64,000 bases of DNA, taken from assembly GCF_003704095.1 (NCBI RefSeq), contig NW_020846908.1, positions 248,001 to 312,000 on the forward strand, given 5' to 3'. The position numbers and the translations under genes are program-made. The notes below the pieces were generated by a model. The model was not told the origin of the DNA. It saw only the letters and a list, made by a program, of their open reading frames with translations, and did not search any database. Of this stretch, positions 13,056 through 60,500 are shown piece after piece. Source of the stretch: Pocillopora damicornis (taxonomy: Eukaryota). Each line of letters starts with the position of its first letter. The first letter of the stretch is position 1.

Positions 13056-16000
13056 TTACTTTTCTTGTTGAGTAAGGTGTGACACTTCTGTTAATGTCCT
13101 CTCCAATGCTTCTACCTGACCTTGGTATGAGCCCTTCTTTTCAGGTAATACAGGCAGATTAGTAACACCCTCGGCTCTTTCTCCTTGAGGGTCTGATTGG
13201 TTAACAAGGTTAGCATGAGCCCAGGAAACTCTTTCAGTACTAGGTTTTTGTGGAGGGATCATGGTAATGCATGCATCTTCATAGTCTTTACACTCAGTAC
13301 CTGTTGCAAAAGCTGCAAAGTGGGTGAATTTTGGTGGTGACCCTTCCAAGATGCTATCAGAGCTCTTACTTTGATGTCTTGTAAGAGTCACTGCATTATC
13401 TGATGCTCTTTCTGCTGGATTTTTATTCTTTGTCTTTTTACTAAGATCCACAGTAGCATAGAGTGCTGGCAAAACCTCAACACTAGAGGAACATGCTGCA
13501 TTCATATAAAAAAAGTTTGGAGAGCCAACTACAGATAAAGGTTTCTCACCACGTGAAAAGCTTTGTGTTCTCTCAGCATGATCATCAGATGCAACTTGCT
13601 GAGCTGATCTTGGTACACTGGATGGTTTTTGATTTTTTGGAGTTGCACTGGGTTCTTTTGAATGCTCATTACCATTTGTTAATTCATTCTTCTTTTTGGG
13701 TATAGCGGGTGCCATTTTTGTCCCATGTGATTTCTGGTCAGCAGATGGCTCCTCCTGCATCAAATGCCTCTGTTCCATTTGAGATCTTTTGTCCTGTAAA
13801 CACCACAAGATGTATCATGGAGTCAGGCCTGTTTGGCAAGCAGAACAAGGTATAAAACATCTTGTAAGTTAAAAGAAGACAGGTTTTTATTCCACTCAAT
13901 GACCTGCATCTACTTGAGACCTCTTAAGTTTTCTTTTACTTCCCTGCATGACCATTTTTCTCTTTTTTCATCCTTATGATTGTTTTCTATCAGAATTAAC
14001 TTCCCACCAAATTATAGCCGCACACTTTTCTAAGATACAGTGGTGGGTAACTCTGGATAAAAAGGATGTCAAACATTAATTTTTAAGAGGACTATTACCC
14101 ATTCCTGTAAAAATAACAAAGAAAGGTGAATCACCATTAACAGCATTATTGCAATCACTTACCAGTGATTGAGAAAAGTTACGGCTTGAAGTACTTGGTG
14201 AACGGGCTAGTCTGTCATAGCTTCCTTCCTGTATGGTGTTTTCCGTCTGCACTGAACTAAGTGTGTTGTACTGGTCCCTCGGATAAGTTGAACTGGATGT
14301 ATGGGAACCCCAGCTTGGTAGCCTCTCCAGGCGGCTGTAGCTTAGAGCAGATTCTGAGACCATTGAGAAGCTGCCAAGACTATGTGCACTGCCTATACTA
14401 TCTGATCTGCCTATGTGATTATATGCTTGCTGTGGTGTCCCTGTGTCAATGGGTCGTGGCACACTCTGGCTCATATGTCTAACAGATCTGTCTCGATTCC
14501 CTGGAGATAAGGAAAATTATTATGACTCAATCAGTCAGAGTTCATTTGTGAAGTTGTGTAGTAACCTGAAATTGCTAACAGTTTTTCAGAAGTCTATTCT
14601 GCATGCCTGAACATTCCCAAGTGTTTCTACATAGACAAAACCAGTTAATCCCAATTTTGTACAATTAGAAGAAAAAAAAACTTAACAAAATTATCATAAA
14701 TACCTGGGAAGTTTTGGAGGCTAAACCTGAGTTGATCATAGGCACGTTCAATGTCATCTTCTGTCAGCTCATTTGAAGCTGTTGGGGAATGGAAGTTCCT
14801 TCCCCTCCTGACACGAGCAGAAGCAAAACTGTCTATGGCATCAAAAATCTTGTTGTCATCACCATTGCGTGTGACAAAGTTGTATTTCCCTTCACCCATA
14901 GGGGATGCCCTGCCAGCCTCAAAGATAAATTCATTGGAATCTAGAGCTTCATAGTTGCGAATTGTTGTCAAGGGCCACTGAGCCAGCACAGCTCGAGTAC
15001 GCTCTAAAGCCAGGGACAAACCCCACCTGGAAATGTGTAAGAGACACTGTTGGTCCTTAGCTCCTATTCTCTGCATTTGTCGGCTGCCACTGCCTTTGAC
15101 CCTGAAGACCTCACCTACAAGACAAATTGGGATACACCATGTTTACAAGGACTGGTTACCCTTGTTAGACTAAGCATTTCAGAAACATTCTGTTTGATAG
15201 CAGTTTCATGAGCCCAAAGCACCAGAGGCATAAATGGGTTTTTTGACTCTAACCTGCTACTCGTGGATTTAAAGTAGTTTGCATTTGTAACTGAATCACC
15301 CACAGATCCATCACAGTCTCACTCTCTGCAGCCAACGTCAATGTTTCAGCATCAGTACTGATCTCAAACACATACTGCCTCGACTTTTGTTCCATTCTTT
15401 TGAACACCTTGTATCTGGGAAACAATTCCAATGTCCCTCGTGCCATTTGCCTCTGCCATCCTTCTTCTCTATCAAACCACTGCAGGAAAGGTTGGTCTCC
15501 AGCACAATATTTTCGTAGCACATAGTAACTCTTCTTCCATTTCTTTGTGAAAGACTTTTTCAACCAGCCTTTGCTTTTTGCATCATCTTCTGTCGGTTTC
15601 TCTAGCCACCCCTAACAAGTAACATAAAGAATTCAGATTAAAAAACTACATTGTGCTGATGGTTGTAATTACGAATACTATGTGAATCTTGTTGTTTATC
15701 ATGAAGTATATTTTCAATTGATCATTACCATACCTATGTTATAGTAGTAAGGATTTCTCTTAATGTGTTACCCATTTTTCTCAAACCTACTTTCAAAAAT
15801 TCCATGGCTTCAACTCTGACTTATGCAAATGAAATCCCCTGTTCATTCAACCATTTTTATTCATCTTAGAAACATCACCCTGTGGGTACTGAACTGAACA
15901 TAAGATGACTAACCCTTTATTTGTATTAACATTATGCTGTGCACAGCATATGAATAAACAGTCTTGTGCATGTCTTTCTTTAGTAGATGATTGCAATTTC

Positions 16001-32006: not shown

Positions 32007-35000
32007 AGAATGTGTAGGTGGTTTGGAAAGGGACACTAAGTAACTGATGTTTGCATTTTTGAAAAGGAGAAAGAGCATTTACCTTCAAACGATTCCAGTG
32101 AAAATATTGTTCAATAATGGCCAAAAAGTATCTATTCATCTGAAGTAAACTCAGACTTGGGTATTTTATGGTCTATTGCCACTGGTGTCTGAATAATTCT
32201 GAACAGAAATGAACTTCATTGTTGCCATGCTTCCTTACAGCTGTTATTGGATCTTGTCAAGCAATGTGCTCTCTTCCCCTATTGTGTGACAAGATCAAAC
32301 AATGGCCTGCTCATAGACTAAGAACATGCTTACTGCCATTCCTTTGTTGGAGAAAAAAATCAAAATTATTTTGTTATAGCTAGTTGCCTCAAAAATGTTC
32401 TCCCAGATAATTTTGCAGTGGAAAGCAATAATTGATTGGTACTGAAAGATCTAAGCACAAGAGAATTGCATGGAGAATTGACTAAAGTAACATTTAGTTC
32501 CATGTGAAATTATTTCAGTGGGGAAGGATTAATTAAAAAATAACTTGAAAATCAGCAAAGAAGGGATTGTCCATAGTTAATGGGCATGTGAATATGTTTA
32601 CAAAAATTGAATTCGTGTGTTGTCTGTTTCAGGTGGAAGTGGTGATGAGCATGGTAATGTCTGCATGTTAGACCTGTAGTTTCAGTTTCTTGTCTGGCAA
32701 TCTGTCAGTAATGTATCACTCTCGATTCAACTTATATTGAATTATAAGCTTAAGCTAGATCAGTCAGGGAGATAAATTAATAGGAATAATTACAAATGCA
32801 TGTTAGTCAATGATCTAACCATTCTGACCTTACAAATCAATTGATTCCACTTGGTTTGTTTGGATGTTATTAATATTATTTTGTTTAATTTTTGTATTTC
32901 ACTGGCAGGTTCCTCTGAGGAGCGTGGCTTTTGTGATTATTTGCTGACATTTTTCTCCTCCTTAATATTTATCTGTACGCTGCCTTTATCACTGTGTTTC
33001 TGTATAAAGGTAATGACCTTCTTAGGTTACTGTTGACAAAATTAACTCAAAATTTTCAAGATATCGCTCTTTAGATAGAGAGAGCAGTTAAGTTTAATTT
33101 TAAAAAAAAATACAAAATCTTGAAAAAAAGGGCAATGCAACTGCAAAAAATATTTTAAGGGAACCATGGTTTCTTTAAAAGTAGCACAGGTTGGAGGATT
33201 TTTGCACAAGGCACCCTATTTTGTTGACAATAATCTTAATATTAATCCAACTCGTGTACTTTTTTGCATTAATTAGCTGTTGTAGGGAACCAATATGGTT
33301 ATTTTTAATCAGTTCACAAAATCATATTACAAAGTCAGGAGAAATTTTAACAGATTTTCTTCTGGTGTAGTTTTCTTTTAAAGGTTTTACTGTCTTAATC
33401 TTTTTTTGAGTTCTGTCAGGGAGTTAATTGTATCATATGTAAACAATTTTTACATTTTCCTTTTCATTACAAATGGAAAGGACAACACATCTATTGCAAA
33501 CTAGCTGTAATTTAAATTGCTCCATTATTGGAGTTATGAGAAATAAAAATGATTCTTTTAAAATTTATTAAAAAGGTTTTTTTTTTTATTTGTTGGCATT
33601 TAATATTCTTGATTTTGTCTTTACTGTCACATAGGTATAAAATTATAAACATCTATTATTTTATGTCAACAAACTTCTTAATCTGACTGAACAATTTTTT
33701 TCCTTTCCTTGTCATTAAGATTGTACAGGAATATGAGAGAGCAGTTATTTTCCGTCTTGGTCGACTTCTTCCTGGGGGAGCAAAAGGACCAGGTGAAAAT
33801 TATGGACCTGTTTATACAATTACGAATTAGATATTATTGTTCACATTGAAAACTGTCATTTTTTCATGGCACTGCAATTGAAATTTTCCAATCATTTGCT
33901 ATGATTTTGAAAATTACCTCCAATGTCAATTAAACCACAAAATGTTAGTGCAGTAAGATAATAGAAGAAACTTCTAAATGAATAAGAATAAATCAATATG
34001 AATTGAAGTTGGTAAGCAATAACTATAGGACTGAGTGGAATCCAATTCGGCTTGTAATCATTAAGTTATTGACAAAATAGGACAACTTCAAAGCGGGAGT
34101 CTGATTTGTCAATCATGGGTATGATTACAGACAGAATTGGACAATGTATAGTCCTGTTACCAATTAATCAAACGTAACCCTAAGCAAAAAACAGTAATTA
34201 ACTTGGAAAATGCATGACAACAGCATGTGCACATAACCCATTCTGTCCACTTACACAGGCATGGCATGTTAACTATCCCTTTAACTGTCCTATTACACTG
34301 TCCAAATACAAGCATGACATGTACACTGTCCTATGCAGTGCTCAAATCAGGCTGTGATAACCAATCACATTCGAAAATTTTGTTATAGTTTTGATTAAGG
34401 ATGACAAAAATTAATTTGGATTCTACTTGACAAATATTAGACCCCTAATTTAACTTCTCTTAATTGATAAAGACACAAGAAATACATTGTGAATAATAAT
34501 GCTTGAAACAAAGCATCTGTAGGTTGTGAGATTGACCCTGGCAAACTGTTAATTTTTTAGGAATGTTCTTTATTCTGCCATGTATTGACTCCTACCAAAA
34601 GGTAGACCTGAGAGTCGTGTCATTTGATGTGCCACCTCAAGAGGTAAAGAACAACATAGTGAAGCAACCTTATTTTCTTGGGGACAGGTAATTTATATAT
34701 TAGTTAAGAATGGTGGATCTGAAAGTGTGGTCTGAACTCCAGGTGACAGTAGATTTGAGGAAGACTTTTGTTGGTTATTTCAAGACAAATAATTCAGTAG
34801 TATGCGTATTTATGTTAACAAAAATTTTGGCAGGTTTTGACCAAAGACAGTGTTACTGTAGCAGTTGATGCAGTGGTATATTTCAGAATATACAATGCAA
34901 CCATGTCCATCACCAATGTGGAAAATGCCAATCGTTCCACACGTCTGCTAGCTCAGACCACCCTGAGAAACGTGCTGGGAACCAAGAACCTCAGTGAGAT

Positions 35001-36217
35001 ATTAGGTGAAAGAGAAAGTATCAGTGAAACAATGCAGGCAAGTATGTCATATGTAACTTCATAGTAAAGCAAAACCATTGCAATTCCATACTATAACCAA
35101 GTCTGAGATGCTTTAGATCAACTCCTACTTTTTATCTCTGATTATGTTAGAAGTTTTCATTGGTTGGATGCATGTATTGTGTGATTAAGTGCATGACTAA
35201 GCAAGTTACAAAGAAGTAAGTAACCTCCCTTAGTATTCTTGATATCACCTTAGGGCTCAACCCTTCCATTTGTGTAGCTGATTTCGAATCAAACATTGCA
35301 TTGTTGTTGTATTTAGATTTGAGGCACATTAGAAAGAAACTGGGAAAAAATTTTTTGTTGTTTTAATTTGTTAATTTGTTTATATTTTGTTGTTAATTTG
35401 GGTGAATGTACTGTTCCACAGACTTCTTTGGATGAAGCCACTGATCCATGGGGTGTCAAGGTTGAGCGAGTGGAAGTGTAAGAACATTCACAATCTTTTT
35501 ATTGCTCTTAATGTTCTAGTTGCTGTTGTCCTTCTATTATCACATTTCTGTGTTGTCTTCACCAGTAATGGTGAAGTTTACAGTGATAATATTGTTAACA
35601 AAGTCTGCTAAACATCAATTTTTTGCATAAATGTCTGTTTTTTGATAACTTGTTAGTAACTGTTAATTGATTTTACAAGATTCTAAAATCTCATATGTCT
35701 CTTGTTGATATTTGTCCACAGGAAAGATGTGCGTCTTCCTCAACAACTGCAGAGAGCCATGGCAGCAGAGGCTGAAGCTTCTCGTGAAGCTCGTGCTAAG
35801 GTACTCAACCAAAGTTCACATTTAACAAAGTTATTGTATTGTTTCTTCTGATCAGTAACTTTGTATTTCTCTTCAACTAGAAAAAGTTACTAGAAGTTAT
35901 TGTATTGTTTCATTACAGTACCAATTTCAAAAAAAACTATTCAGATTTTAGAAATGAAAAAAGAGAGAAGAGAATTCTCCAGAGAAAGCTTTCACAATGA
36001 GTTGTACTTTTCACATCAGGTCATTGCTGCAGAGGGTGAACAGAATGCATCTCGTGCACTGAAGGAAGCTGCTGACATAATTTCAGAGTCGCCTTCTGCT
36101 CTCCAACTCAGATACCTGCAGACACTGACAACCATCTCAGCAGAGAAGAATTCCACTGTTATTTTCCCTCTCCCTGTCAACTTTTTGGCTAGACTTCTTC
36201 CAAATGAGAACAAATGA
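28012..36217 (+). CDS. STOM: Stomatin/band-7 (SPFH) paralogue 1, ~298-305 aa; exons 28012-28114 (or alternative 29985-30027), optional microexon 32633-32653, 32909-33009, 33720-33792, 34561-34643, 34834-35037, 35422-35477, 35722-35800, 36020-36217
   Basis: GFCDY-hydrophobic hairpin-CTLP, [83 protein letters not shown]. One GC-AG intron. The first-exon choice is less certain than the core exons. Confidence 0.92.
31975..32003. repeat. (TG)n microsatellite
   Basis: About 14 TG units read directly. Confidence 0.9.
34020..34398. repeat. Interspersed repeat in a stomatin-1 intron
   Basis: Its 3' end, tgataaccaatcacattcgaaaattttgttatagttttgattaa, matches the arms of the palindromic element at 50248-50371. 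Confidence 0.55.
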
Positions 36218-36268
36218 GTAGATGAAAGAAGGAAGTGTTCATCCTTGACTGAAATTAGTGTTCTGTGA
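36218..36268 (+). other. Putative stop-codon readthrough extension of stomatin-1 (VDERRKCSSLTEISVL*)
   Basis: In frame after TGA 36215-36217; the terminal LTE(I/V)SVL-stop is conserved with stomatin-3. Confidence 0.6.
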
Positions 36269-40800: not shown

Positions 40801-42540
40801 TACACAGACGAGGAGCTTGGAAACTAGGCAAATTTTAAACTCGACATTACAACCCATTATCTGGTGTAGATATTGGGTTATCACATTAACTTCACACTCT
40901 ATTGTAGATTGACTGTTTGCTCTTGACCAATTGGAGTTTCATAGGAAGTCTAATGTATAATGATGTCATTTATAATGTGTTCCCTTTGGTTGGATTTTTT
41001 TCTGTAGGACATATGTGGTACTTAGTGTATTTTTTAGCCACTTCCAATCTGATCAGCTGGTTGTGCCTTTGATTTATTATAGATTTTGACAAAAGACAGT
41101 GTTACTGTTGCTGTTGACGCTGTGGTATATTTTAGAATCCATGATGCAACTATGTCCATCACCAATGTGGAAAATTCCAATCGTTCCACACGTCTGCTAG
41201 CTCAGACCACCCTTAGAAATGTGCTGGGAACCAAGAATCTCAGTGAGATATTGGCTGACAGGGAAGTTATTAGTCATGTCATGCAGGTGATAACAGAATC
41301 TGAGTCTGGATCATTGCTGTATGTTTTAATTAAGAATTTTTAAGCTGTAACAGGTTGAGAAATCAATGGCAAGCAAATTGCTGACTTCATTGGAAGATTC
41401 CAATAATTTTTTTTCTGCCAAACCTAAGTTTGACACAATGGTTATATTAGCCATTCTTGAATGCATTTTAAAGGCAAGAATCACCCTTAACAGTCAAACA
41501 AGTTGAAGCTAATATTTTGATACAGGCTGTGTAATGTGTGGAACTATTTGTCTTGTTTACATAAACAGTGGAAATAAGTCATTTGTGATCTTTCATGAAA
41601 TAATGATCAAACCCTTGATAACTCGAGTAACTTAAATGTTGTGCATGAAGGAAAGTTGTGTGGATCATATCTTGTGTTTTCTTTTCATTAGAGCTCACTT
41701 GATGAAGCAACTGATCCTTGGGGTGTTAAAGTGGAACGTGTGGAAGTGTAAGTTAAAGCTTTATCCAGCTTTTTAAATTGGTTCCTAGTTTTAACTTGAA
41801 GCTGTACATGAAAATGCCCCTCCCCCCCTTAAAAAAAAGAAAATAAATGAATAAAAATGACTGACATAACATGTACCTTACAGGAAGGATGTACGTCTTC
41901 CTCAGCAACTACAGAGAGCCATGGCAGCAGAGGCTGAGGCTTCTCGTGAAGCTCGTGCCAAGGTATGAAATTTTTTCATTAGTAAGAAATCTCAGTTTTG
42001 TGGTAGGTCATCAGTGTTACAGTTTATTAGTTATATGTAAGAGCTGCCTTTTTTAAGTTTACATAGGCTCCCTTTGATTACAAAGGAAGCTGATGTGAAG
42101 TAGTCATTCTAGATTTATAGATATGGTTCTAATTTCAAGCTTTTGTATTATAACTCGTAACTTGGATTATAAAATTGAGTGATCTGTATATTCAGGTTAT
42201 TGGTGTTTAGTTAAGAGGTGATACTGAACTTAAATGACTTTGAATATCAGAAATTAAATAAAATAAAAACAAAGATACTTCAATAGATGAAGCTGTAAAA
42301 TTAGAAAAAATATCATTTGGTGAGGTGTTCTTTTCATTTCAGGTTATTGCTGCTGAGGGTGAACAGAATGCATCTCGTGCACTGAAGGAAGCTGCTGACA
42401 TCATCTCAGAGTCTCCTTCTGCTCTTCAGCTGCGATACCTACAGACATTGACAACAATCTCAGCTGAGAAGAATTCCACAATCCTATTTCCTCTCCCTGT
42501 TGATTTCATGAGCAGATTCTTACCAGACAAGAAAGGTTAA
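37835..42540 (+). CDS. STOM: Stomatin paralogue 2, 268 aa; exons 37835-37847, 39380-39480, 39614-39686, 39909-39991, 41083-41286, 41692-41747, 41884-41962, 42343-42540
   Basis: Same exon sizes (101/73/83/204/56/79/198) and SPFH motifs as paralogue 1; first exon MASE; ends TAA TGA. Confidence 0.93.
40378..40960. repeat. Interspersed repeat insertion in stomatin-2 intron 4
   Basis: This intron is much longer than the homologous introns of the other two paralogues; internal hairpin-like segment gtgagttacctgcc...ggcagataacac. Confidence 0.45.
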
Positions 42541-44865
42541 TGAAATCAAGAGAACAAAGAATGAGAAAAAACTTGCATCATTGCAAGATAGTTGATTATT
42601 CAAAATAGATATCAGTGCTTTTTATCATAAAGGAACATTAAGATTCAGAGCTTGAGATTAACAAGAACAAATCATGTAGTAGTGATAATTTCACATTATA
42701 TGGCAGCCAGATTTTTTTAAATTTCTTCTGTTGTACATATTTGTGAAAGAAACAATTCTTTATCAGTATAACAGAAATGCAAATGGAGCCAAAAAAAAAA
42801 AAAAACATGTTTCCAGTTGATCATGATTGATGCAGTGCCTTTTATGGTAAGCCAGCTACTTCTCTTGTGTACTTGCAAACTGGGCAAAGCCTGTGACAAC
42901 CCCATCATAGGACAGACTGGACTGTGGATTCTTTTACTGATGAAACAGAAATAAAATGATAGATGCTTTCAAAGATATTTCATTTATTTAGTTTATTCCT
43001 TCCACATGATTGCAGTTTTAGTGTCTATGAGCTCTATTCAAATCTAGTTTAGTGGGATGAAAAGTGCAGATCCCCACCAAAAATTAAGTGACCATGATAG
43101 CCATTCTAACTTGTTAATTAGTAGTGCTTGCCAACATCTGAGCAATTTAGGAGTTAGTCTTGAGCTCTGAATGCATATTTCAGTTTATATGAGTAATATT
43201 TCTGCATTAGACATAAGCTTATTTACTCAGGGTTAACAATGTATGTTGAATAAATGTACTTCTCAACTTTTTCTTTAGAAATGTGTAATGGTCAAAAATT
43301 GATTGATGTTGGAACATCTCGATAACAGACATGCTAGAAACAGTCCTATGGCAAGGGTCATGCAATATACAATTATAGCATTTTTATCTAATCAATTCTG
43401 ATGGGCTTACAGTTCCTATTGATTTAGTAAATAGAAAATATTATGAAATGTAATCATTAGGATAATTCTGATCAGAGGACTCTAAGAGTCTGTACTAGTT
43501 TGTTTTCAAGTAGAAAAAAGTTGTGTTACTTTCTTTTTTTAAAGTTAATGTTATGTGGTTATGTTGTTAGCATTGAGAATATGTAACATGTTAAAAGTGG
43601 TGAGCTGTAATTTTTTGGGGGGGCTGGTTCATAGACTGGCCTAAACATCTATTGTAGACATGCTGTGTTGCATAATAGCATAATAAACATATAAAGAATC
43701 ATGCCATGTTATGGTTGTCCCAATTCATTTTCACCAGGAAGTTCAATCTCTTCTCCTTGGTTTAAGTACAATGCTGTTAATTGCTTGTGTTATCCTACAA
43801 TGTGGAGACAATCAATGAAGCCAAGAATTGACTCTTTATTAAAAAAGATATCATTATTTACACTCCAAGTTGCAGCTAGCAGTCTTCAAACAGACAGTGT
43901 GAATACATAGTTTGTTCTTTATTTCTGCCTTGCACAAACCTATTGTGGTCTAGTTTGAGTCTCAAGAAAGAAATCAGTTGACAAATGCCAAAGTCCAATA
44001 GAAATTTGATCCAGGCCTTTGTTCCACACATGTACAACAGAGTCTCATAGCTGTTAATCCTTAATATGATTTACATCATTCCTCTTTCAAGATTCAGATT
44101 AATTTGAGTAAAAGGGAAAATTCCTATTCTGTTTAAATGATATTTTACTTATTCTGTTTAAATTTTTGCCAGACCAAAACATGAATAAGGGAAAAAAACT
44201 TGTGGATCCATTAAAAAGTAGCAAATTTTGAACTGAAAACTGTTTGAAGTATGACAAGATAATAGTATTGATGTAAGGGTTCTGTGTTCAACTCATGATT
44301 TAATGAGGAAATTCTTCTTAATGAATTACAGCCTAAAATTAGGGGGGAAAAATGCAGAGGCACTTGTAAAACTGTACATTACCTATAATTTTGTTTGGGC
44401 AAAAGAACACATTTGGGTTGGTTGTATGATGATAACAAAATAAGAAACCCTACTTTTAATTAAAATGAAATTGATGGATTAATTTTGGCGTGTGGGTATG
44501 TTGAGTTACTGTGTTAAAATTTTAATTTATGTATTTGTGTTTAGGTCGTGCAGTTCGCTTAGTGTCACCTGCGCACGTTTTACTGGGGGTAAAAGTGAAA
44601 GATGTTTTTCAGGATTACCAACTGAGATTTCCTCATCAAAGAAACAAAAATAGCTTTGTAACTTTTGTATTGCCAAAATTATAAATATTTTAGATATATC
44701 CATGACAACTAAAAAATAGAGAAATTGATATTTTGACACCTTTGGATATGATTGGTTGTCCCTCGGGAGGAGTATATATCACGTGATGTAGCTGGGTTGA
44801 AGTCTGAGTTGTTTGCAATCGCAGCTTGCCTTGTATTGCCTTCTACGACTACAAATTCCCTGAAA

Positions 44866-47800
44866 ATGGCCTCGGAAGGTAAGAATTAAAATCCTCTTTA
44901 AGGTTAAAAGAAATGAGAAAATTAAATTTCATGTCAGTGGAATTTCAGCGCCAATTTTTAGACTTCATGGGGGGAAAAAAATGGATTAAGATCGTTAAAG
45001 CGACCCGAAAATTCCGTTTTTAGCTAACTCTGAGGCAAAAGTTAATCGTTTCTTCAACATATACCATTTAAGTTTTTTGTTGCACAAAGTTCTGGGATTA
45101 TCTGCTCGAATCATCATGTCGTTTCAAGAAAATTTGATCAAATCTTACGTTGAAAAACCATCTCACTTCAACATAACAGAACACCAGAAGTGAATGATGC
45201 TGCTGTTACTTGCAAATTAATTAACATTACCCGATCCTAACTCGCTCGATGATTTATGTGCGGTCAAACATGCGTTTCTTGAAATATCACCTCATTTCCT
45301 TCCCTGCGTTTGTGCCGAAAATGGTTAAAAGAGGAACCATCATTACTGTGGGGTCGTTAAGTGCTAAACATGGATCATGTAGGAAATTGCTGCAACAAAT
45401 GAAATCTGCAGAATCGTTTAATTATGGTGCGCATTAAATACGTTGCTTCAACATGAGCATGTTAGGTTTGTATATGACAGTAGTTGTGAAACTGAAGATG
45501 GTGGTGATGATATCAGACGCGGTGCAAATGAAGTTTTCAAATCGCTTGAACTTTTATAATAGTTTGAATAGTTTTCTCTGACCTCATCCATCTAAAGTGG
45601 CTTCAGGTTGCATAATATTTGGGTTCATTCGTTTGTGTACATTGTGTTGTTATGAAAATCAAAGCTACAAGCCATCTTCCACAGATAGTTTGTACTGTTA
45701 TTAGGTAAGAACCTTCCTTGGCAAGATAAAAAATATATTCAGAGTAGCTGTGTACGTGTAGTATATCATTGTATTGTTTAGGATTGATGAATATTTTAAC
45801 AATTTAACAATTGTATCTTTTGCAATTGTAATGGAGTGTTTATTAGTAAAGTCACTTCCATTGTTGACTATGACCTTTCCACTGAGTTGCCTCTATTCCT
45901 ATGCAAGCAATGGTATCTACTGGTCAAGTGTTTCATTATGAAGTCTGTTCTGCTGTGTAGTTGTTTTACAGCCTTGTGTAGGGCATTTTCCTTATATGAT
46001 CTCTTAGTGGTTTGCTGTTGTATTTTGTCTTGAATTTGTCAATTTCAATTTTTTTTAATTCATTTGTTATGTATCCTGGAAAAATTAAAATCAGAGCTGG
46101 TGAACTGGTAAATGTTTTTGTTGATTGTTTTTTTTTTGCTTGGTTTTTTTTATAGATGATGATGTTTCAAGAGGGTTTTGTGACTATGTTCTGACAGTTT
46201 TGTCTTTCCTTATCTTTATTTGTACTCTGCCTTTCTCATTGTGTTTTACTTTGAAGGTAAGCAAATTGGTGAATGTAGATCATGAGTGCTCTGGTATGTG
46301 CCTCTTGAACTTAGCCTTATATGTTTTCATCATACTTGATATAAATGTAATTAAGACAACTTTCAGTGAGAAATATGCATAAACTTATGATAATAAGGGA
46401 TGGTTTTGTATACAGATTGTGCAGGAATATGAGAGAGCAGTTATGTTCCGTCTTGGTCGATTACTTCCTGGAGGAGCTAAAGGGCCAGGTATAATGCAAC
46501 ACTAAAACAAGAATAACTTGAATTAAAAAGCTTTGCCTTAGAGGAATAGGAAGTAAATCTTAGACCATAATATATGTAATAATAGAAAATTGGTATCATA
46601 TCTGATTAGAGTTTTTATAGATCCTTATCTTGTTCTTGATTGATGGTGGAACAATACTGGTACTGAATTAAAATGAATATGAATATGAACATGAAAGCCG
46701 GTAGTGTGGGCTTTATATTCTCTACTACCTAGGAAGTGATCATTACTGTGAAGATTGCTTTCATATTCATTACATAATCAGCAGTTCACATGCATGATTT
46801 TGGTTTATTCACAGTTATTAATATCGGTACAGTTTTAAAGTAATAGGTTGTATATGGAAGCTAACCATAAGAAATGAATAGTGATTGTCACTTGCAACTA
46901 TTCTGATTTGGGTTGGCATGAATGATCAGACCACATCATCAATTCCAGTTTTAAATAAACAATAGACTTTGTTTTGTGTATCATATATTGTTATATCCTC
47001 TGATCATTTCTTACTATTATTTTTGTGCAGGGTTATTCTTTATTCTGCCCTGTATTGACTCTTATCAGAAGGTGGATTTGAGGACAGTGTCATTTGATGT
47101 CCCACCTCAGGAGGTATTGACAGTTCTATCTAGGTTGTATGATTTGTTGTTTGAAGAAAGGGTTTCTAGTGTGAGTGCTGTTAGTTTTGATAATAACCAA
47201 GTATCAACATTGGCTTTCAGATTCTGACCAAAGACAGTGTGACCGTTGCAGTGGATGCAGTTGTTTACTTCCGCATCAGTGACCCAACCATGTCAGTCAC
47301 TAATGTGGAAAAGGCTGATCAGTCAACTCGTCTGCTTGCACAGACAACACTGCGAAATTTCCTTGGCACCAAAAATCTCAGTGAAATTTTGGCAGACCGT
47401 GAAGAGATCAGCCATGCTATGCAGGTACAGACATAATTTTGGAATCATTAATTTATGTCTCTTGGAAATAAGTGGACTGGGATTTATTTGTTTGTTACAC
47501 TTTGTAGACTTCTCTTGATAGTGCCACAGATCCTTGGGGTGTAAAAGTGGAACGTGTTGAAGTGTAAGTACTTTAATTTGTAATTCTTGCACTCTAAAAT
47601 TTCCGAGCATAGAGCTTTGAGTGCGTAGTATAGATTGTTATCTTGAAGAATACTGAATCACCATCCAAGTGGGAAGAAAAAGCGCTACTCTCCATCTGGG
47701 AGCTATGAGAGTCAATTTTGTGTACAGATTTAAAACAGGGGATATACTTCTTATTACATGTGAACTGGTTAGTCTTTCTGAAAGAACTTTCTGTCTGCTA

Positions 47801-48537
47801 TTAGTGATGATGTAATAGAAGATTCGGAAATAAATTATTAATATAAAAAAAAAATATATATATTTTTTTTTTTACATGAAACTATGACTCTTTGAAGCCA
47901 TCTTGATTTCTCTTTGTTCACAGTTTTGATTAAGTGTGGAAAAGTATCAATGCATGTTTTACATGAGTTTGGTGAATTTGACTGAGTGTGAAGTCTGGGT
48001 CTTTGGTTATGCAAATTACCTCCTGTAATTCTTGAGAACAGAAATTATTTTTGCTAGCAACTTTCATCAGAACATCCTTAGTAGCAATATGTACTCATTT
48101 AACCTTGTAGGAAAGATGTGCGTCTTCCTCAACAGCTGCAGAGAGCCATGGCAGCAGAGGCTGAAGCTACTCGTGATGCTCGTGCAAAGGTAGATATCAG
48201 CTAACTTGTCGAGGACGGTGCCAAATTCTGAAAGGCTTGTTTCAGTATGATATGTCAATCAAACAATGAGATTATATTTTAAAAGAAAGAAAAGGCTTTT
48301 ACCAAGGAAATTATATTATTGACCATTGTTTGATTTCAGGTCATTGCTGCTGAAGGTGAACAAAATGCATCTCGTGCACTGAAGGAAGCTGCTGACATCA
48401 TTTCAGAGTCACCCTCTGCTCTTCAGCTGCGATACCTGCAGACATTGACATCCATCTCAGCTGAGAAGAATTCCACTATTATTTTCCCACTCCCCGTTGA
48501 CTTTCTGAGCAGATTTTTGCCAGATGAAAAGAAATGA
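44866..48537 (+). CDS. STOM: Stomatin paralogue 3, 268 aa; exons 44866-44878, 46156-46256, 46416-46488, 47031-47113, 47221-47424, 47508-47563, 48111-48189, 48340-48537
   Basis: Identical exon architecture and SPFH motifs; first exon MASE; stop context TGA CTAG. Confidence 0.93.
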
Positions 48538-48609
48538 CTAGGCAGCCAAAAACAAGAAATTGGAGAACGCTCTTCTGAATCACCATTGACTGAAGTTAGT
48601 GTTCTGTAA
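48538..48609 (+). other. Putative stop-codon readthrough extension of stomatin-3 (LGSQKQEIGERSSESPLTEVSVL*)
   Basis: UGA-CUAG context, 23 open codons, conserved LTEVSVL-TAA terminus. Confidence 0.7.
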
Positions 48610-50247
48610 ACAAAACTTGTTCTGTGAACATTTCGAAAATAGTTTACACAGTGTTGTATATAATCCTGCTTTACCTCAGCAAGCAGTTATTTATAATTTT
48701 GATCAATATATGGGAATCTTAAGATTATTTTAACTCAATATATCAGCCAATATCAATCTTGTCAACTACATTTTCCTTGTTGAAAAATATATTGTAATGA
48801 TGACAAAATTGATTAAAAAAAACTGATTGAAAAGCAATCTGAATTAAAACATATACCCTGCTGTGAGTATAAGATAGTAGAATAAATGGGAAATTCCAAT
48901 AGTGCATGGGGTGTAGTCAATTAGGAATCACAAATTAGAAGTGTTCAGATCTCTTTCCTATTGAGTGCTGTTGAACCAAATTAAAGTTATAGCCTCAGGG
49001 GATCAGAGCAGAGATAACCTTCCCAATGAACCAACGAGGACTCAAAGTCTGTACACTAACAGAAAATACCAAGCAGATACATCAAGAGTGCTCTTGTGTC
49101 AGTCACTTTGCCACATATATTTTAGTTTAGCTCTTGGTTTGTCATTAAGATGGTTACCAATCACAGACTAAACCTACCCGATCCTAGATTACTTTCAACA
49201 CTCAGAAAAAAATTTGTACTGACCCTGTTGGGACTTAAAAAAATTTTTTTAGCATTTTGCACATTACTAATCAGTGGTCTGTTTTTTTTTTTTTTTACCA
49301 ACATTTGTTTTTTATTATGCTAGTTTTGCAATAGAAGCGTTTTTTTTCCTTTCATGTTCATAGTTGTCATGTTACTGTATGATGTGATAGGACTGTTAGA
49401 CAAGTATTATTATATGCAGCTGTCATGAAGACAGTATGGAAAACTGATCATTCTGTCTGAAGTCTGCTCATATGTCTGACAAAACTTAAATGCTGTTTAC
49501 TATTTAAGAACATCAAAATATAACATTCACATAAACCAACCATGTGTAGATTAAAGATAAGATTTATATTCAATTGAGAATCATTGACTGTTTAGCATCA
49601 ATACTTGGAGCATCAGAGCTTTCCTAGGAAAATTTTTTATATAATTTACTTCTTATGAATAGAAGTTGCATGTACTGACAATTCTCAAGGGTGAAAGTAT
49701 AAAGCTGCTTGCTGACATTTTTTTTTTAAAATACTTGCTAATTTGTGCCAATTTTGTATCATTTTGCAAATTGGGATGTCCCTTGTTCTAAACTGTCCAA
49801 ATACAGTAGCGTTAGATATAAAATATTGTTGAACCAGTAATTGATGTTAAATGTCAACAATTGAAGTAAAAATTAAAGCTAACATATGGTTAAATGATGA
49901 GTCTTAAATTTTTTTCGATGTGGCATCAAGACTTTTCTGTATGAGGTATAGCTGATCTGATAAAGTGGACAGAATTCTTTCACTTGAAGTGAGTATGTTT
50001 TGGGGAACAGTGATGGTGCATTGATGACTGTGCTTGCCTTCAAGCCTAGTGGTCTGGGTTCCATTCTTAAACCTAGGTTAACAATGTGCTGAGTATCTTA
50101 AAGATTCTTGTATCTGTAGAAAGGGTTCTCCCTGGATTCCTCACTTTCCTTCAGCCAACAAAATGACTTCATCTCCCAACTTTACCTAATAACAATGGGC
50201 TGGCAGACCGACCTTGTGGACGTCTACTGCTTATTCTGATTTATACA

Positions 50248-50371
50248 TTAATCAAAACTATGACGAAATTCTCGAACGTGGTTGGTTATCACCTGCCCGA
50301 TTTGTTATGGTTATGGGACCATTATAAATCGGATTGGTGATAGCCAATCACGCTCGAGAATTTTGTTATAA
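50248..50371. repeat. Short palindromic MITE-like repeat
   Basis: Inverted arms tatgacgaaattctcgaacgtggttggttatcacc / ggtgatagccaatcacgctcgagaattttgttata. Confidence 0.65.
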
Positions 50372-51329
50372 ATAGAATAAGAGAGACGGTGAGTTTTGAG
50401 CTCAGGGAGAGAAGCTTATCCATTTTATGTCAGTCGTGACTAACGTTATATACCTATGTAGCATGAATTTAGGTTTCATTCGTGTCTTATGACTATCGGG
50501 TTTCGTCGTAAGTGATCAAGAATTGCACTTAGGGTTCCTTTCACCACAATCTGAGATGGGTTAGCAAAACTTGTTTCACTCTTTCAAGACACCACTGAAA
50601 AATGATAAAGCGGAAACTAATATGAGTGGGATTGTAAAAGAAGGATGCGGACGGCGGAAAATAAAAATGAACGAGAGAAAATGATTAAAACATTGAAAAT
50701 GTCATCACTGTTAGTAGAAACGAGGCTATCACTGAAAATAATGACCCGAAAATGTGTTAGCTATTATGTATTTCAGCTGTTATTTTACACAATTCAGAAA
50801 GACGAAAGAGAAAACTGTGGATACTGAATACCTAGCTATCACCAGGACATACTCTAGCTTGAACTAAGGATATCCCCACCACCCACGAGTTTATGATCTC
50901 TTGTGCCACCTTAGAAGCACCACCTAATTTTCACATGCAATTTTAAAACATGCACACCAAGTTAGTTTACTCGTGTATATGCTTGAGAATTAGATAAGAG
51001 ATAAATGGGCGAGTGAACGGTGAATGAAACACTACTTTTCGAACGTTTTGCGACGAGCTTCTAGAAGCGATTATAAGATGTTTCGACTGTTGGTGATGTC
51101 AATTTTTATGCTTTATCTATTAATTTCATACTATTGGGATAAAAAAAGGACAACATAAAACACCTTAGGGAGACATTAGATTCTTCAATGTAGTCGCTGA
51201 ATTATTGAGTGAATGAACTGGCCAAACTAAGTTGTTTGCACCTTCGAAAGTGAGCCCGCGTATCTACCTCCCCAACAGGGGCTATTTTTGTCTTCCATAA
51301 TATGACTCTAGAAGTAACCAAAAAGTATC

Positions 51330-51915
51330 ACCTATCTGTTCACTATAAATGTATCAGTCAACTCCCACAATAACAATATATGTATTTCAATGAATACCGA
51401 TAAAGGACAGATCAAAGCAGTAGACATTGTCACTGGGGATATTTCAGATGATCTTAAAAAGCAAATGAGAGCGAAAGTCCCAGATGACCCAACTAAAACT
51501 ATGAGCTTAATATACTCACTTGTCCAAAGAGAAACAACAGCAAAATGTGATTTAACAACCAATATTGATGTCACTGATGGTTTGACAAGTGGTGCAGAAT
51601 GTATTATAGAAAGCATAGGGAACTCTAGCAGACCAAGTATTACATGGGTGTCTTTTTCTGATCCAAGCATTGGCAGCCAAGAAAACTGCCATCTTTATCA
51701 CAGGGAGAATATGAAAAAAAAACTGGACACCAATTTTGGAGGTCACTAGACAATTCAGGATTAACAAGGAAAGTCAAGTGAAAATTATCAAGACCAGCTG
51801 GTGCAAAAACTATTCATCGTTTTCAAGGTGACTCTTAAGATGCAGCAGTTGTTGATTTCCCATCTTTAACAAGATATCATATGCACTATGTTAGCTTAAA
51901 TTGGGTTCAAAACAG
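51330..51915 (+). pseudogene. Decayed PIF1-family (Helitron/Helentron-type) helicase fragment
   Basis: TTNIDVTDGLTSGA, then after frameshifts GAKTIHRFQGDS*DAAVVDF...HMHYVSLNWV, which corresponds to PIF1 motifs V and VI (TIHKSQG; YVALSR), with an in-frame stop. Confidence 0.8.
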
Positions 51916-52391
51916 TTTGGTGCTCAAGGCAGCTCTTTGCATGCCTTTAGATAATAAATTTTAACCTTCATTTTTCTCTTAAATTGTAGGTTAAATGTTG
52001 AACTATACATGGGCATGTCTAAAAACATTCAATGGATCATGAAATTGTCCAGGTTCTGGTGGGTTCCTGTTCAACTGTTGTACTATGATGTCACAATTCC
52101 AGGCTACATCCCACACCATCAGTCTTGACAAAAACTGTTACCTTACCAAGGCTACTGAAACATTACAAGCAAGGAAAATTCAAGTTCAACCCATATTACC
52201 ATGAAGAGAGTCCAATTACATGCCTAAACATATGAACAATTGCATGATAACAGATTCACTGACAAGGTTGTAAAAATCCACACTAGCAACCTCACTGCTC
52301 AAATGTGATAAAACCAGCCCCTTGCTCTTCCCAGACAAAAGAGTATAGGCAGCAGATAGACCATGTCATTACTTTGAGACACCATTATTGT

Positions 52392-57500: not shown

Positions 57501-60500
57501 CACCATTTTTTGCGCATTGGAAGTACATGGCCATAAAGTGACCCCGGCCGAAACGATTATGTTACATAGCTGTGACGTAGAAAACTCTGAAGATATGTAG
57601 GCAACTATGGTGGCGAAATGAGAGATTAAGGAAAGAGGACGAATATATTACGTGGCCGGAGCGCTAAGTGTCGACAAGTGATTTTAGGTACAAGAATGAT
57701 ACATATACACCGGTTATTTCTACACACTACTATCCAAAGGATGTAGCTGTATGGCCAAAATGGACGCGTTTCGATCGTCGACATCGAGGAGATTTTACTT
57801 TTCAAAGTCGTCGACCTTATGCTCCATCCCGGCTTTGAAGACGGCTGTTGCGAACACACACTACTGGTCAAATCAGGGGAAGATGGCCAATGAATTCAGC
57901 CAGAGAGAATCCTGGTTAAGGTGCCTGTTTCCAAATCGGATACGATTGTTCCACATTCTTTTCAGCTGACATTTCGCAAGCGAAGAATGGTGAGCTGCTT
58001 ACTGTTGTTTATTTCACGCGCTTGAGATACGATCATACTCAAACTCCTTGTCTTTCCACATGACTAGATTTACAATTTTCTTCTCGTACGAAAATCCTAC
58101 CATTCGTAGTTTCCATCGTATTTTAATAGCAGAAATACATCCCTTACAATAAAGGTCAAGCCCTTTCCTGAGCTGACCGACATCCTGTTGCCTGGATGGT
58201 GCGAAACCTCTGGAGGATACTGACAACTAAGGGGCCGTGTATTGTCCTAACCTAGGTTTCCGAAAATCCACCACACGAGCCATTGATCCCCCGCCCTCAA
58301 GAAACTAAATGAAGCAACAATAGCAATATAATTGTGATAACAGCACAACAATGAGATAAATTGTGAAACACAAATATTATTGAATTAGATGGTAGCGAAT
58401 CCAAGTGGTGTGTGAAAGTCGATGCATCGAAATATATCGAAAATATTCATTTAAAACACTGATATCGGTTATTTGCTAGTAAGCGAAATGGGTTATGTGG
58501 CAATGCTGTATCTAAGATAAAGACGTTTTCCTCCAATATAAATACCTATTTGAGATAAAACTGAATCAGAGGACAATAAACTCAATCGTTTTCCATTTAA
58601 CCGGCTCGACGGTGATAGCCTCTGCCTTTGCAATCTCTGAGGAAAGGAGCAACTCGCACTGTAACTGCCCGATGACTTCTCGGCCAAAAAGATCATTGTG
58701 CCTGGTCATACAGCTGATTATTTCGAATCTTCCGTCAAAAGTTAGCTTTGGTTTGCGGAGGGAATTACTCTTCAGCAACGAAACTCTAGAGCGCTGACCG
58801 AGGGGAACCTTTGCCGCACTTAGCGCAAAGGAAGAATATGTTATGGTAACAGAAACAAACACAGCCTCCAATTTTTAATATAGACTCCGCCACAGAAAAC
58901 AAAACATGAACGCAACGAAATAAACATTCAGCAATGGGAGTTTTCCGTTCTAATCTTGACCTGAACACCACAGGCGAGAAACCGTCTTCATCAGTCTTCG
59001 TCGAAATTCTCGTTTGATGCATGCGGTTCCCGTTCGCAAGCTGAACCGTACACTCAACCTCCATTTCTTCTTTACTACTTAATTACGATGTATCAAAAAT
59101 CTCGGTAGAGTCTGCTGAAGGTAGGAATACATCACTATCGGATTATTTCAAGAGTATTTCAACGCTGACTAATACAAAATTACAAGAGATGAAAGAGATT
59201 TGTAAGTTTTCACAGTTTTCGACGTCATCACCCGCTAACTCGTTACCAGTCTACAGGACACTTTTAAGACAAAATGAGCACTCTGAGGCCCGAAAAAACC
59301 GAGATTTTATTTTTTTGTTTGTATTTCTTCTTTTATTGGGATTGGTTTGTACATATGATAAACTATAGTACTACGCAAAAAAAAATCCGTGTCATGGGCA
59401 CTTTAAAAGAAGAATAGTTTACTCCCAGTAATTAATAATTCAAATTATTAATGATCAATTTATCATTTAACTCAAGTACAGCGCTTATAATAAAAAATAC
59501 AGATTTTACCTGAATAGCCTCTGCATATAGGAGAAACTTGGCCACTATTGTGGGGACACCTCTGGAAACATAAATGGAGTGGCGCATGATTTGCAAAAGT
59601 GGTTCTTTGGGAGTCACTGAATGAAGGAAAATTCCATCACCAAAGCTGCTTCTCCATTTCATGAAGACCAGACCTGGACCAGTCTGACGGGGAAAAGATC
59701 CAAAAAATAATAATTATAAAGCAAACCGAGTCAGTAATAATTTGAAATATGCACATGTCATTTACTGAAAAAAAAGACTTGAATTTATGAAAAGTCACAA
59801 GTTACTCATTTAAAGTAGCTTGAAGGGGTTAAGGTTGCATTTTGTAATGCAATTGTCTGGTACATGGGCTGGCCGTAGAAACCCAAAGCATAAGGAATCC
59901 CAGAAGTTGTAAGTCTGGGAAAATAGAAAATTTAGATAAACATTGCCATGTTTATCTATGTTTAAAAAGGTTGTTTGTTTCTCTAAGGCACTTTCAGGGA
60001 AGATTTCTGATCACCATTTTTTCCAAATATCTTTTATTTGTAGCTGTGGTATCAATTTCATGAAACCTTCAAATTGTTTCAGTGAAAAAATTTGTTACTA
60101 GAAGTTATCAGGTCACAACAGTNNNNNNNNNNNNNNNNNNNNNNNNNNNNNNNNNNNNNNNNNNNNNNNNNNNNNNNNNNNNNNNNNNNNNNNNNNNNNN
60201 NNNNNNNNNNNNNNNNNNNNNNNNNNNNNNNNNNNNNNNNNNNNNNNNNNNNNNNNNNNNNNNCTGAGAGTGAACACCTACCTGCCTGGCTGTGACATGT
60301 AAGTCTAAATAGGGAATCTTGTATCCAAAGACTGATAAGGAGGTCACTAGCTGCAGACATCCAACATGCTTAGTATCCTCAAGAGGTTTCCATTCTGCAG
60401 ACCAGTTGTGTCTGGCAAATTGCCACCAATGTGAGAAAATATGCCTCAGATCAACCCCACTTAGAACTGGTGAGCTATGAAGATGATCAAGGTGGTTGAG

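Follow-up and report, generated by a model that had tools for sequence, protein, structure and literature searches.

The stretch of DNA analysed here, which we call the window, comprises 64,000 nucleotides (nt) of the coral Pocillopora damicornis (contig NW_020846908.1 of assembly GCF_003704095.1, positions 248,001 to 312,000 of the forward strand). It carries three stomatin paralogues arranged in tandem on the + strand, at approximately 33.7-36.3 kb (stomatin-1), 39.6-42.5 kb (stomatin-2) and 44.8-49.9 kb (stomatin-3), which are also referred to below as genes 1, 2 and 3. The main subject of this work is the end of stomatin-3, where an in-frame UGA is followed by a short open frame, hereafter the tail, which, as we propose, a fraction of ribosomes may translate.

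The first exon of stomatin-3 ends at 44878, and its coding exons 2-8 occupy positions 46156-46256, 46416-46488, 47031-47113, 47221-47424, 47508-47563, 48111-48189 and 48340-48534 (+ strand). All joints are of the GT..AG type and are found in RNA contigs from four runs of four studies; the exon boundaries and the frame of each exon were checked. The RNA material consists of assembled contigs (Logan) of polyA and total RNA, from runs labelled as coral or marine metagenome, and the comparison with the genome passed over a repeat at 47834-47879. When the exons were searched singly, the one at 47221-47424 matched the Pfam Band_7/SPFH domain (PF01145; 43.9 bits, E 3.5e-11). The exon at 46156-46256 is hydrophobic, as fits the N-terminal hydrophobic hairpin of stomatins, and the last exon retains the oligomerisation/raft segment (KNSTIIFPL in the coral, KNSTIVFPL in human stomatin).

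The three genes end in different ways. In stomatin-3 the codons GAA AAG AAA precede the first stop, UGA, at 48535-48537, which together with the CUAG at 48538-48541 constitutes the proposed recoding site (+ strand). The extension that follows in frame has 23 sense codons (48538-48606) and encodes LGSQKQEIGERSSESPLTEVSVL, with the peptide stretch ...SSESPLTEVSVL; its new C-terminus would be ...ESPLTEVSVL. The second stop, TAA at 48607-48609, comes directly after SVL, as does the TAA or TGA of every intact copy described below. The end of stomatin-1 (36215..36268, + strand) is composed of AAA TGA (TGA at 36215-36217), GTAG, a 16-codon tail VDERRKCSSLTEISVL and a second TGA at 36266-36268. Stomatin-2, whose last exon is at 42343-42537, terminates with GGT TAA TGA (42535..42543, + strand), i.e. 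with a double stop and no tail, and serves as an internal negative control.

The tails of genes 1 and 3 share a 22-mer, located at 48586-48607 (+ strand) in stomatin-3, where it encodes LTEVSVL and the first base of the second stop. It is identical to its copy at 36245-36266 in 21 of 22 positions, and the sole change (A/G) exchanges Ile for Val. A match of this kind was obtained in none of 100 shuffles, and within one mismatch only these two copies occur in the 234-Mb genome (234.35 Mb in 4393 contigs were searched). The two tails differ in length by exactly seven codons, and the blastn alignment of the two genes ends at 48541/36221, leaving the stretch between the stop and the 22-mer unaligned. 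The preliminary description of this locus had reported the UGA-CTAG, the tails of 23 and 16 codons, the near-identical 22-mer and the seven-codon difference, and every detail of this anatomy was confirmed. Runs X10 and X14 have RNA contigs with a G>A change at 48563, by which Glu takes the place of Gly in the variable section of the tail; this change is likely an allele or derived from a sister species.

A homologue search with the 65-residue last exon as the query returned many exon-sized fragments of coral genomes and metagenomes, and the DNA was taken for 12 of them. Intact tails, in which UGA is followed by 16-27 open codons and by S-[V/I/Y]-L-stop, were found in eight distinct coral DNA copies and two database fragments, with lengths of 16, 20, 21, 23, 23, 23, 23 and 24 codons. 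After TGA CTAG, the tail reads LDGQKEVECERLSESPPLTEVSVL in L009, LDGQKGTNKERYTESPMTEVSVL in L010/L011 and the same as the latter except for one residue in L016, the second stop being TAA in all three; it reads LDGQCEDVHRDSSESPLTEVSVL in L014/L015 and LDERKEDISTDESPLTEVSVL in L019, both with TGA as the second stop. In L020-L025 the first stop is followed by CCTG, the tail is PDEQKEDIPTESPL[T/A]KPSVL and the second stop is TGA. The tails read from other corals also include PDEQKEDIPTESPLTKPSVL, with a stop right after the last Leu. The two diverged database fragments, which came from a full-library search, read ...GEK-W-LYGRQNKTVTSDDSTSLTEDSYL, ending in ...SLTEDSYL (P0126), and ...DAK-W-LGSRKEKSGSSVQENKEETKLVEVSIL-W..., ending in ...KLVEVSIL (P0032); S-V-L is the ending of all eight DNA copies, S-Y-L that of P0126 and S-I-L that of P0032. 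A second homologue search, aimed at the tail region, returned only the three fragments that were already known. Some metagenome genes had been predicted with TGA taken as Trp, which gave 'proteins' running through the stomatin stop (P0001, P0004, P0005, P0032, P0126 and P0125); the first three of these came from the search with the last exon and already show the tail. Such calls are a handy route to eukaryotic recoding candidates whose contigs are concealed in metagenome data.

All 11 copies that belong to the tail-bearing lineage, intact or decayed, have TGA as the first stop, and in seven of them CTAG comes next. Six of the eight intact DNA copies have CTAG, the exceptions being gene 1 (GTAG) and L020-L025 (CCTG). 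Among the intact copies the second stop is TAA in some and TGA in others, while the first is constantly UGA. The decayed tails are those of L012 (UGA-CTAG, an early TAA and an eroded motif), L017/L018 (UGA-CTCG, ending in ...ESSMIHL) and L013 of Desmophyllum pertusum (GCA_029204205.1, MU825901.1, 11697-11770), which has UGA-CCAG and a 7-nt deletion that shifts the frame, with 20 nt of the motif remaining. For the L013 locus, the public protein (P0011), named 'hypothetical protein', has 67 residues and spans the last exon only. In the copies with TAA as the stop the tail is absent or decayed: gene 2 and L028 have none, and in L027 a second stop lies four codons on and the motif is eroded. Intact and non-intact tails are distributed 8 to 3 among TGA copies and 0 to 3 among TAA copies (Fisher p ~0.055, not corrected for phylogeny), so the association of an intact tail with TGA rather than TAA is only suggestive.

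The preliminary description had named coding-type conservation across corals as the comparison to make, and the region past the stop does look like coding sequence: it is in frame, its indels are whole codons, its terminal changes are silent, and both the UGA and the CUAG are conserved. All differences in tail length are multiples of three, which for at least four indel events has a probability of roughly (1/3)^4 = 0.012 by chance. The four variable sites in AGT GTN YTN TRA are all silent (GTT/GTG, CTG/TTG/CTT, TAA/TGA); the silent share of single changes in this segment is ~28%, and four silent changes would be expected with a probability of ~0.006. The final block, ESPLTEVSVL, is written with a variety of synonymous codons (GAA/GAG, CCA/CCC/CCT, TTG/CTG, ACT/ACA, GTT/GTC, GTT/GTG, CTG/TTG/CTT). 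Over the final 30 nt of the tail, frame 0 is free of stops and gives the lowest ratio of nonsynonymous to synonymous differences (pN/pS 0.38), frames 1 and 2 contain 7 and 12 stops, respectively, and second codon positions vary least (2/10). Identity in these 30 nt is 79%, compared with 58% over the 60 nt past the second stop in a forced alignment. Between the same copies, the upstream exon shows a synonymous divergence of 0.24-0.69 per site and a pN of 0.01-0.08. Seven divergent copies use CTA for the Leu that follows the UGA, which suggests a nucleotide constraint beyond the amino-acid need, as expected of a readthrough context. We propose that purifying selection acts on ...ESPLTEVSVL in stony corals.

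Based on these comparisons, we consider it very probable that some form of ribosomal recoding makes the tail, and we lean towards programmed recoding of the UGA, with readthrough in the CUAG context as the mechanism common to the tail-bearing copies. The UGA at 48535-48537 would be a programmed leaky stop, at which most ribosomes terminate to give ordinary stomatin, while a fraction decodes it and continues for 23 codons to the UAA at 48607-48609, giving a longer isoform. Decoding would proceed through a near-cognate tRNA, favoured by UGA-CUAG, in all tail-bearing copies. In stomatin-3, a hairpin that resembles a selenocysteine insertion sequence (SECIS), described below, could raise the recoding by inserting selenocysteine (Sec). 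As the tail is kept in at least five copies with no detectable SECIS, Sec insertion does not appear to be the general way in which it is made, and stomatin-3, which has the same UGA-CUAG context, should read through too.

Several observations weigh against this explanation. The passage of ribosomes through the stop, as well as the residue inserted at the UGA, is what we infer from sequence comparison. Because of the SECIS-like hairpin, CUAG readthrough is maybe not the main route in gene 3. Over the whole tail pN/pS is 0.4-0.8, and it reaches ~1 for gene 1 against some copies; the constraint resides mainly in the first 2-5 and the last 7-10 codons. The variable middle of the tail would nevertheless be compatible with a flexible linker presenting the terminal motif. 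Nucleotide conservation in ACTGAAGTTAGTGTT exceeds the protein need (Ser AGT and Glu GAA are invariant), and this segment overlaps a splice donor that is in use. Three more copies with UGA have decayed tails (L012, L013 and L017), and in L013 the 7-nt deletion leaves an intact 20-nt motif out of frame. Finally, Logan contigs drop rare variants, and low-level editing or rare splicing could escape them. The leaky UGA-CUAG readthrough claimed in the preliminary description thus stands as regards the conservation of the tail and the CUAG context; as regards the mechanism in gene 3, it has to be qualified, as Sec insertion may operate there, either by itself or in addition to leaky termination.

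The hairpin in question lies in the same 3' untranslated region (3'UTR), 890 nt downstream of the UGA, at 49408..49484 (+ strand), and resembles the kink-turn structure of SECIS elements. Read and folded, it consists of helix I (UAUAUG.AGC / GCUCAUAUG), an internal loop, AUGA at 49425-49428, helix II of 11 positions with one mismatch, an unpaired AAAA(C/G) right after it, the apical loop AAAACUGA and the 3' GA at 49459-49460. One RNA contig (X14 record 19) contains it together with the last exon and the tail. An AATAAA occurs at 48881, 270 nt past the tail, yet RNA contigs run at even depth to at least ~49900, which indicates a long main 3'UTR with the hairpin inside it; stomatin-3 may also have an isoform with a short UTR and no hairpin.

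Comparison of the 3'UTR with all loci by blastn gave a single island, window 49423-49477 against L010 4722-4780, so that the hairpin, with its SECIS layout, is the only conserved 3'UTR island between the window and L010/L011. A covariance model built from the window copy matched L010 and L037 at ~30 bits (E ~1e-4) and, with filters off, no other stomatin locus. The hairpin is single-copy in the genome. Standard pairs fill 96% of its pair cells and two pairs are changed on both sides, but this covariation comes from two lineages only and 59 of 500 shuffles reach the observed score. In an energy-based SECIS scan it was the top hit in both the stomatin-3 and the L010 loci (-16.1 and -19.6 kcal/mol, respectively), the antisense control giving three hits in 39 kb. 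A scan of JGI metagenomes with the hairpin core returned only the L010 taxon (L031, L036, L037) and nine unrelated hairpins.

The Rfam SECIS_1 model aligns the hairpin over the full length at only 14 bits, far under the gathering score of 35, and C/D-box snoRNA models score similarly (~14 bits), because the kink-turn is shared. An Rfam SECIS scan over 26 kb of the window and six loci found nothing, and RF00031 was also silent genome-wide, in the controls and next to glutathione peroxidase (GPx) genes encoding Sec. Seven of the eight GPx-domain matches in the genome (G000) have an in-frame TGA, which in six of the seven is the only in-frame stop (single-TGA genes include C1460:85063-85428, C266:2173-2526, C4007:305372-305734, C3577:210286-210471 and C3877:160690-160848); judging from these genes, this genome uses selenocysteine. 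An initial strict pattern scan found no SECIS within 1.5 kb of the GPx genes and was replaced by the energy-based scan with longer flanks, which picked canonical AUGA...AAA(A)C...GA hairpins at four of six GPx loci, 1.5-2.2 kb downstream (among them L048 ~4870-4931 and L049 ~5400-5475, both on the minus strand). On 200-nt slices, SECIS_1 gave one GPx-linked hairpin 18.6 bits and another no score. Rfam thresholds seem to miss coral SECIS elements of this kind, and its SECIS negatives are therefore uninformative in this genome.

Three other readings of these elements were considered. A repeat or miniature inverted-repeat transposable element (MITE) origin of the hairpin was rejected, as the hairpin is single-copy and a 16.9-bit match at 14417-14487 lacks AUGA. 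A C/D-box snoRNA is less likely, since only ~30 nt separate the boxes, the interior forms a perfect stem and the element belongs to an exon. A conserved island downstream of the Desmophyllum-type copies (L013 versus L019) was set aside as a SECIS and looks like a poly(A)-signal region.

The preliminary description had proposed a SECIS search as a means of dismissing selenocysteine; instead, the search left it standing, as gene 3 has a canonical, conserved SECIS-like hairpin. Stomatin-3 might then be a selenoprotein, with the hairpin functioning as a SECIS, the UGA being read mainly as Sec, and CUAG readthrough being ancestral or a back-up that the copies without a SECIS still use. This possibility, which we regard as tentative, overlaps with readthrough in that the tail is made either way. 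It is supported by the layout, conservation and single-copy state of the hairpin, its rank in the same scan that recovers the GPx-linked elements, and its presence on the transcript that carries the tail. Moreover, all copies with the residue signature of gene 3 have intact tails and about half of those with the signature of gene 1 are decayed; a maximum-likelihood tree of the last exon did not resolve, none of its branches being well supported, so the orthology of gene-1-like and gene-3-like copies rests on these signatures (TTIS...VNFL versus TSIS...VDFL).

On the other hand, the hairpin was found in two of about seven tail-bearing lineages: the energy scan and the model detected no SECIS-like element downstream of the tail-bearing copies L009 (2.9 kb), L014 and L019 (7 kb), L020/L023 (1.3-1.6 kb) and gene 1 (3.3 kb), and the energy scan gave no candidate downstream of gene 2, L017, L027 or L028. 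Among ~40 homologous fragments, a limited sampling, none has Cys at the UGA position, the tail-less copies ending in Gly-stop or Lys-stop, and no conserved Cys partner or redox motif was seen near the UGA. If the hairpin is a working SECIS, Sec insertion in stomatin-3 may add to or dominate readthrough, for which we see a reasonable but less than even prospect.

The sequence past the stop may also have been kept for a different reason, i.e. the 22-mer and the first post-stop bases as an RNA or DNA signal (the 5' splice site of a 3'UTR intron, a U1, microRNA or RNA-binding-protein site), with an untranslated tail whose open frame is incidental. One such signal does exist. A contig of run X1 departs from the genome after 48598, and its next 30 letters are exactly those of 51994-52023, their sole match in the genome. 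This defines an optional intron of 3395 nt (48595..51989, + strand, GTTAGT...TTGTAG), whose donor GAA|GTTAGT (48594/48595) lies within the 22-mer and is joined to a canonical acceptor at 51990 (...ttgtag|GTTAAATG). The spliced form reads ...LTE|VKC-stop in the frame of the tail and loses both the SVL ending and the SECIS-like hairpin; its exon junction, ~57 nt past the normal stop, is borderline for nonsense-mediated decay. The donor explains part of the excess nucleotide conservation and perhaps the motif that outlives the frameshift in Desmophyllum, and the invariance of AGT and GAA despite synonymous alternatives points in the same direction.

The donor cannot explain the whole tail, however, because gene 1 (ATTAGT) and L020-L025 (CCTAGT) have lost the GT and yet keep S-V-L-stop in frame. 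The spliced form occurs in only one of the four runs, and by blastn its acceptor exon has no conserved counterpart in the other coral loci. Nor does a nucleotide signal account for the silent exchanges in the Leu (CTG/TTG/CTT) and Val (GTT/GTG) codons, for the variable middle of the tail, which stays open and changes by whole codons, or for a stop that is kept right after Leu though its identity switches between TAA and TGA. We therefore consider an RNA signal alone to be improbable. The suggestion, raised in the preliminary description, that the 22-mer could be conserved independently of frame holds as far as the nucleotides persist out of frame in Desmophyllum and contain a used donor, but the tail as a whole is not explained in this way.

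It is far less probable that the tail is reached by alternative splicing or by A-to-I editing of the UGA. An AG stands right after the stop (CTAG|) in most copies, and splicing to it had been put forward as the observation that would speak against readthrough; in addition, contigs may hide rare isoforms. However, the RNA contigs of the four studies are colinear with the genome from 48372 to past 49200-49500 and show only the seven constitutive introns, with no joint near the stop, no base change at 48535-48537 and no A>G at 48537. The unspliced and unedited form through the UGA is the main form of the transcript. If the phase-0 donor at 48189 were joined to the AG at 48541, the message would pass into another frame and meet a TGA after 15 codons, and L020-L025, in which CCTG provides no AG, keep the tail. 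Least likely of all is a chance open frame in AT-rich sequence combined with relic similarity from a recent duplication: a single 23-codon open frame would arise with a probability of ~0.2, but the same tail is found in at least eight diverged copies, which differ by 24-69% at synonymous sites and have flanking UTRs that cannot be aligned.

Other features of the window include a perfect 28-nt palindrome at 47845-47872, in intron 6 of stomatin-3, and a self-complementary element of ~112 nt at 50259-50370 (region 50248-50370), which looks MITE-like and has related copies in an intron of stomatin-1 (34343-34398). A run of 141 N at 60123-60263 is an assembly gap or masked sequence.

As regards the function of the tail, its ending S-[V/I/Y]-L-COOH is invariant, is preceded by L-[T/V]-E-x, and matches, as a motif, the rule for class I PDZ ligands, [S/T]-x-[V/L/I]-COOH. 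It is plausible that S-V-L-COOH would act as such a ligand at the apex of the stomatin oligomer. Ser at position -2 also fits a phospho-dependent 14-3-3 mode III site. A reading of SVL as a type 1 peroxisomal targeting signal (PTS1) was set aside, since a basic residue is missing at -2 and the protein is anchored in the membrane. Membrane microdomains are organised by stomatins, which also regulate channels of the ASIC/DEG/ENaC type, and the tail could, we infer, provide a link to DEG/ENaC channels. In human stomatin, the segment right after the oligomerisation/raft part is an interaction region, with LANCL1 and a predicted PDZ-protein site (PMC5456319). The coral tail is likewise appended right after the corresponding oligomerisation segment. 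In contrast, human stomatin has no reported post-stop extension, and its predicted PDZ-related motif is internal (IDML) rather than a C-terminal S-x-L.

The best known parallels are the genes in which the UGA-CUAG motif was recognised, MDH1 and LDHB; UGA CU(A)(G) promotes readthrough across a range that extends from fungi to human cells, and the concealed C-terminal signal of MDH1 was traced back to a cnidarian, Hydra (PMC4207609). Readthrough genes of the MDH1x/LDHBx type and the coral stomatins have in common UGA-CUA(G), a first stop that is always UGA, and a short conserved extension with its function in the last three residues (the PTS1 CRL/SRL there, SVL here). They differ in that the coral host is a stomatin/SPFH membrane scaffold, SVL is not a PTS1 consensus, and one paralogue has a SECIS-like hairpin as well as a donor in the extension. 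Other genes with UGA-CUAG readthrough are AQP4ex, OPRK1, OPRL1 and MAPK10. In fungi, Freitag et al. reportedly described in 2012 cryptic peroxisomal targeting by both alternative splicing and readthrough; there, too, a hidden C-terminal tripeptide is exposed by readthrough and splicing acts on the same region, but in the coral splicing removes the tripeptide.

Among selenoproteins, SelK and SelS resemble stomatin-3 in being membrane-anchored proteins with an in-frame UGA close to the C-terminus, within a variable, charged and Ser/Pro-rich segment, and with an AUGA/AA/GA hairpin in the 3'UTR. In contrast to them, the coral stomatin has no Cys homologues or redox partner that we could see, its UGA stands in a strong readthrough context, and Sec would be placed 24 residues from the end of stomatin-3 rather than 2-3.

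A literature search revealed no paper in which stomatin is connected with stop-codon readthrough or selenoproteins. The class of mechanism is already known, and readthrough of a cnidarian MDH1 has already been deduced; the stomatin host is new. If confirmed, a gene that unites a readthrough context with a SECIS-like hairpin, and in which an intron takes out both the hairpin and SVL, would be new as well. Somewhat speculatively, and with more doubt than confidence, stomatin-3 might represent the first selenoprotein of the SPFH/stomatin superfamily, derived by the addition of a 3'UTR SECIS to a leaky UGA-CUAG stop with a functional tail. If this is true, its sister copies without a SECIS would rely on plain readthrough, and the family would offer a living intermediate in the birth of a selenoprotein from a readthrough gene. 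The optional 3'UTR intron, by removing the SECIS and the SVL ending, could then act as a switch. The locus contains built-in controls for distinguishing readthrough from selenocysteine, namely gene 1, which has the tail but not the hairpin, gene 2, which lacks a tail, and gene 3, which has both features.

Annotations of coral stomatins stop at the UGA. A minor isoform with a C-terminal docking motif would give the stomatin oligomer a handle for anchoring or sorting that is absent from current gene models, and would extend the functional use of UGA-CUAG in Cnidaria beyond MDH1, with unusually clear comparative support.

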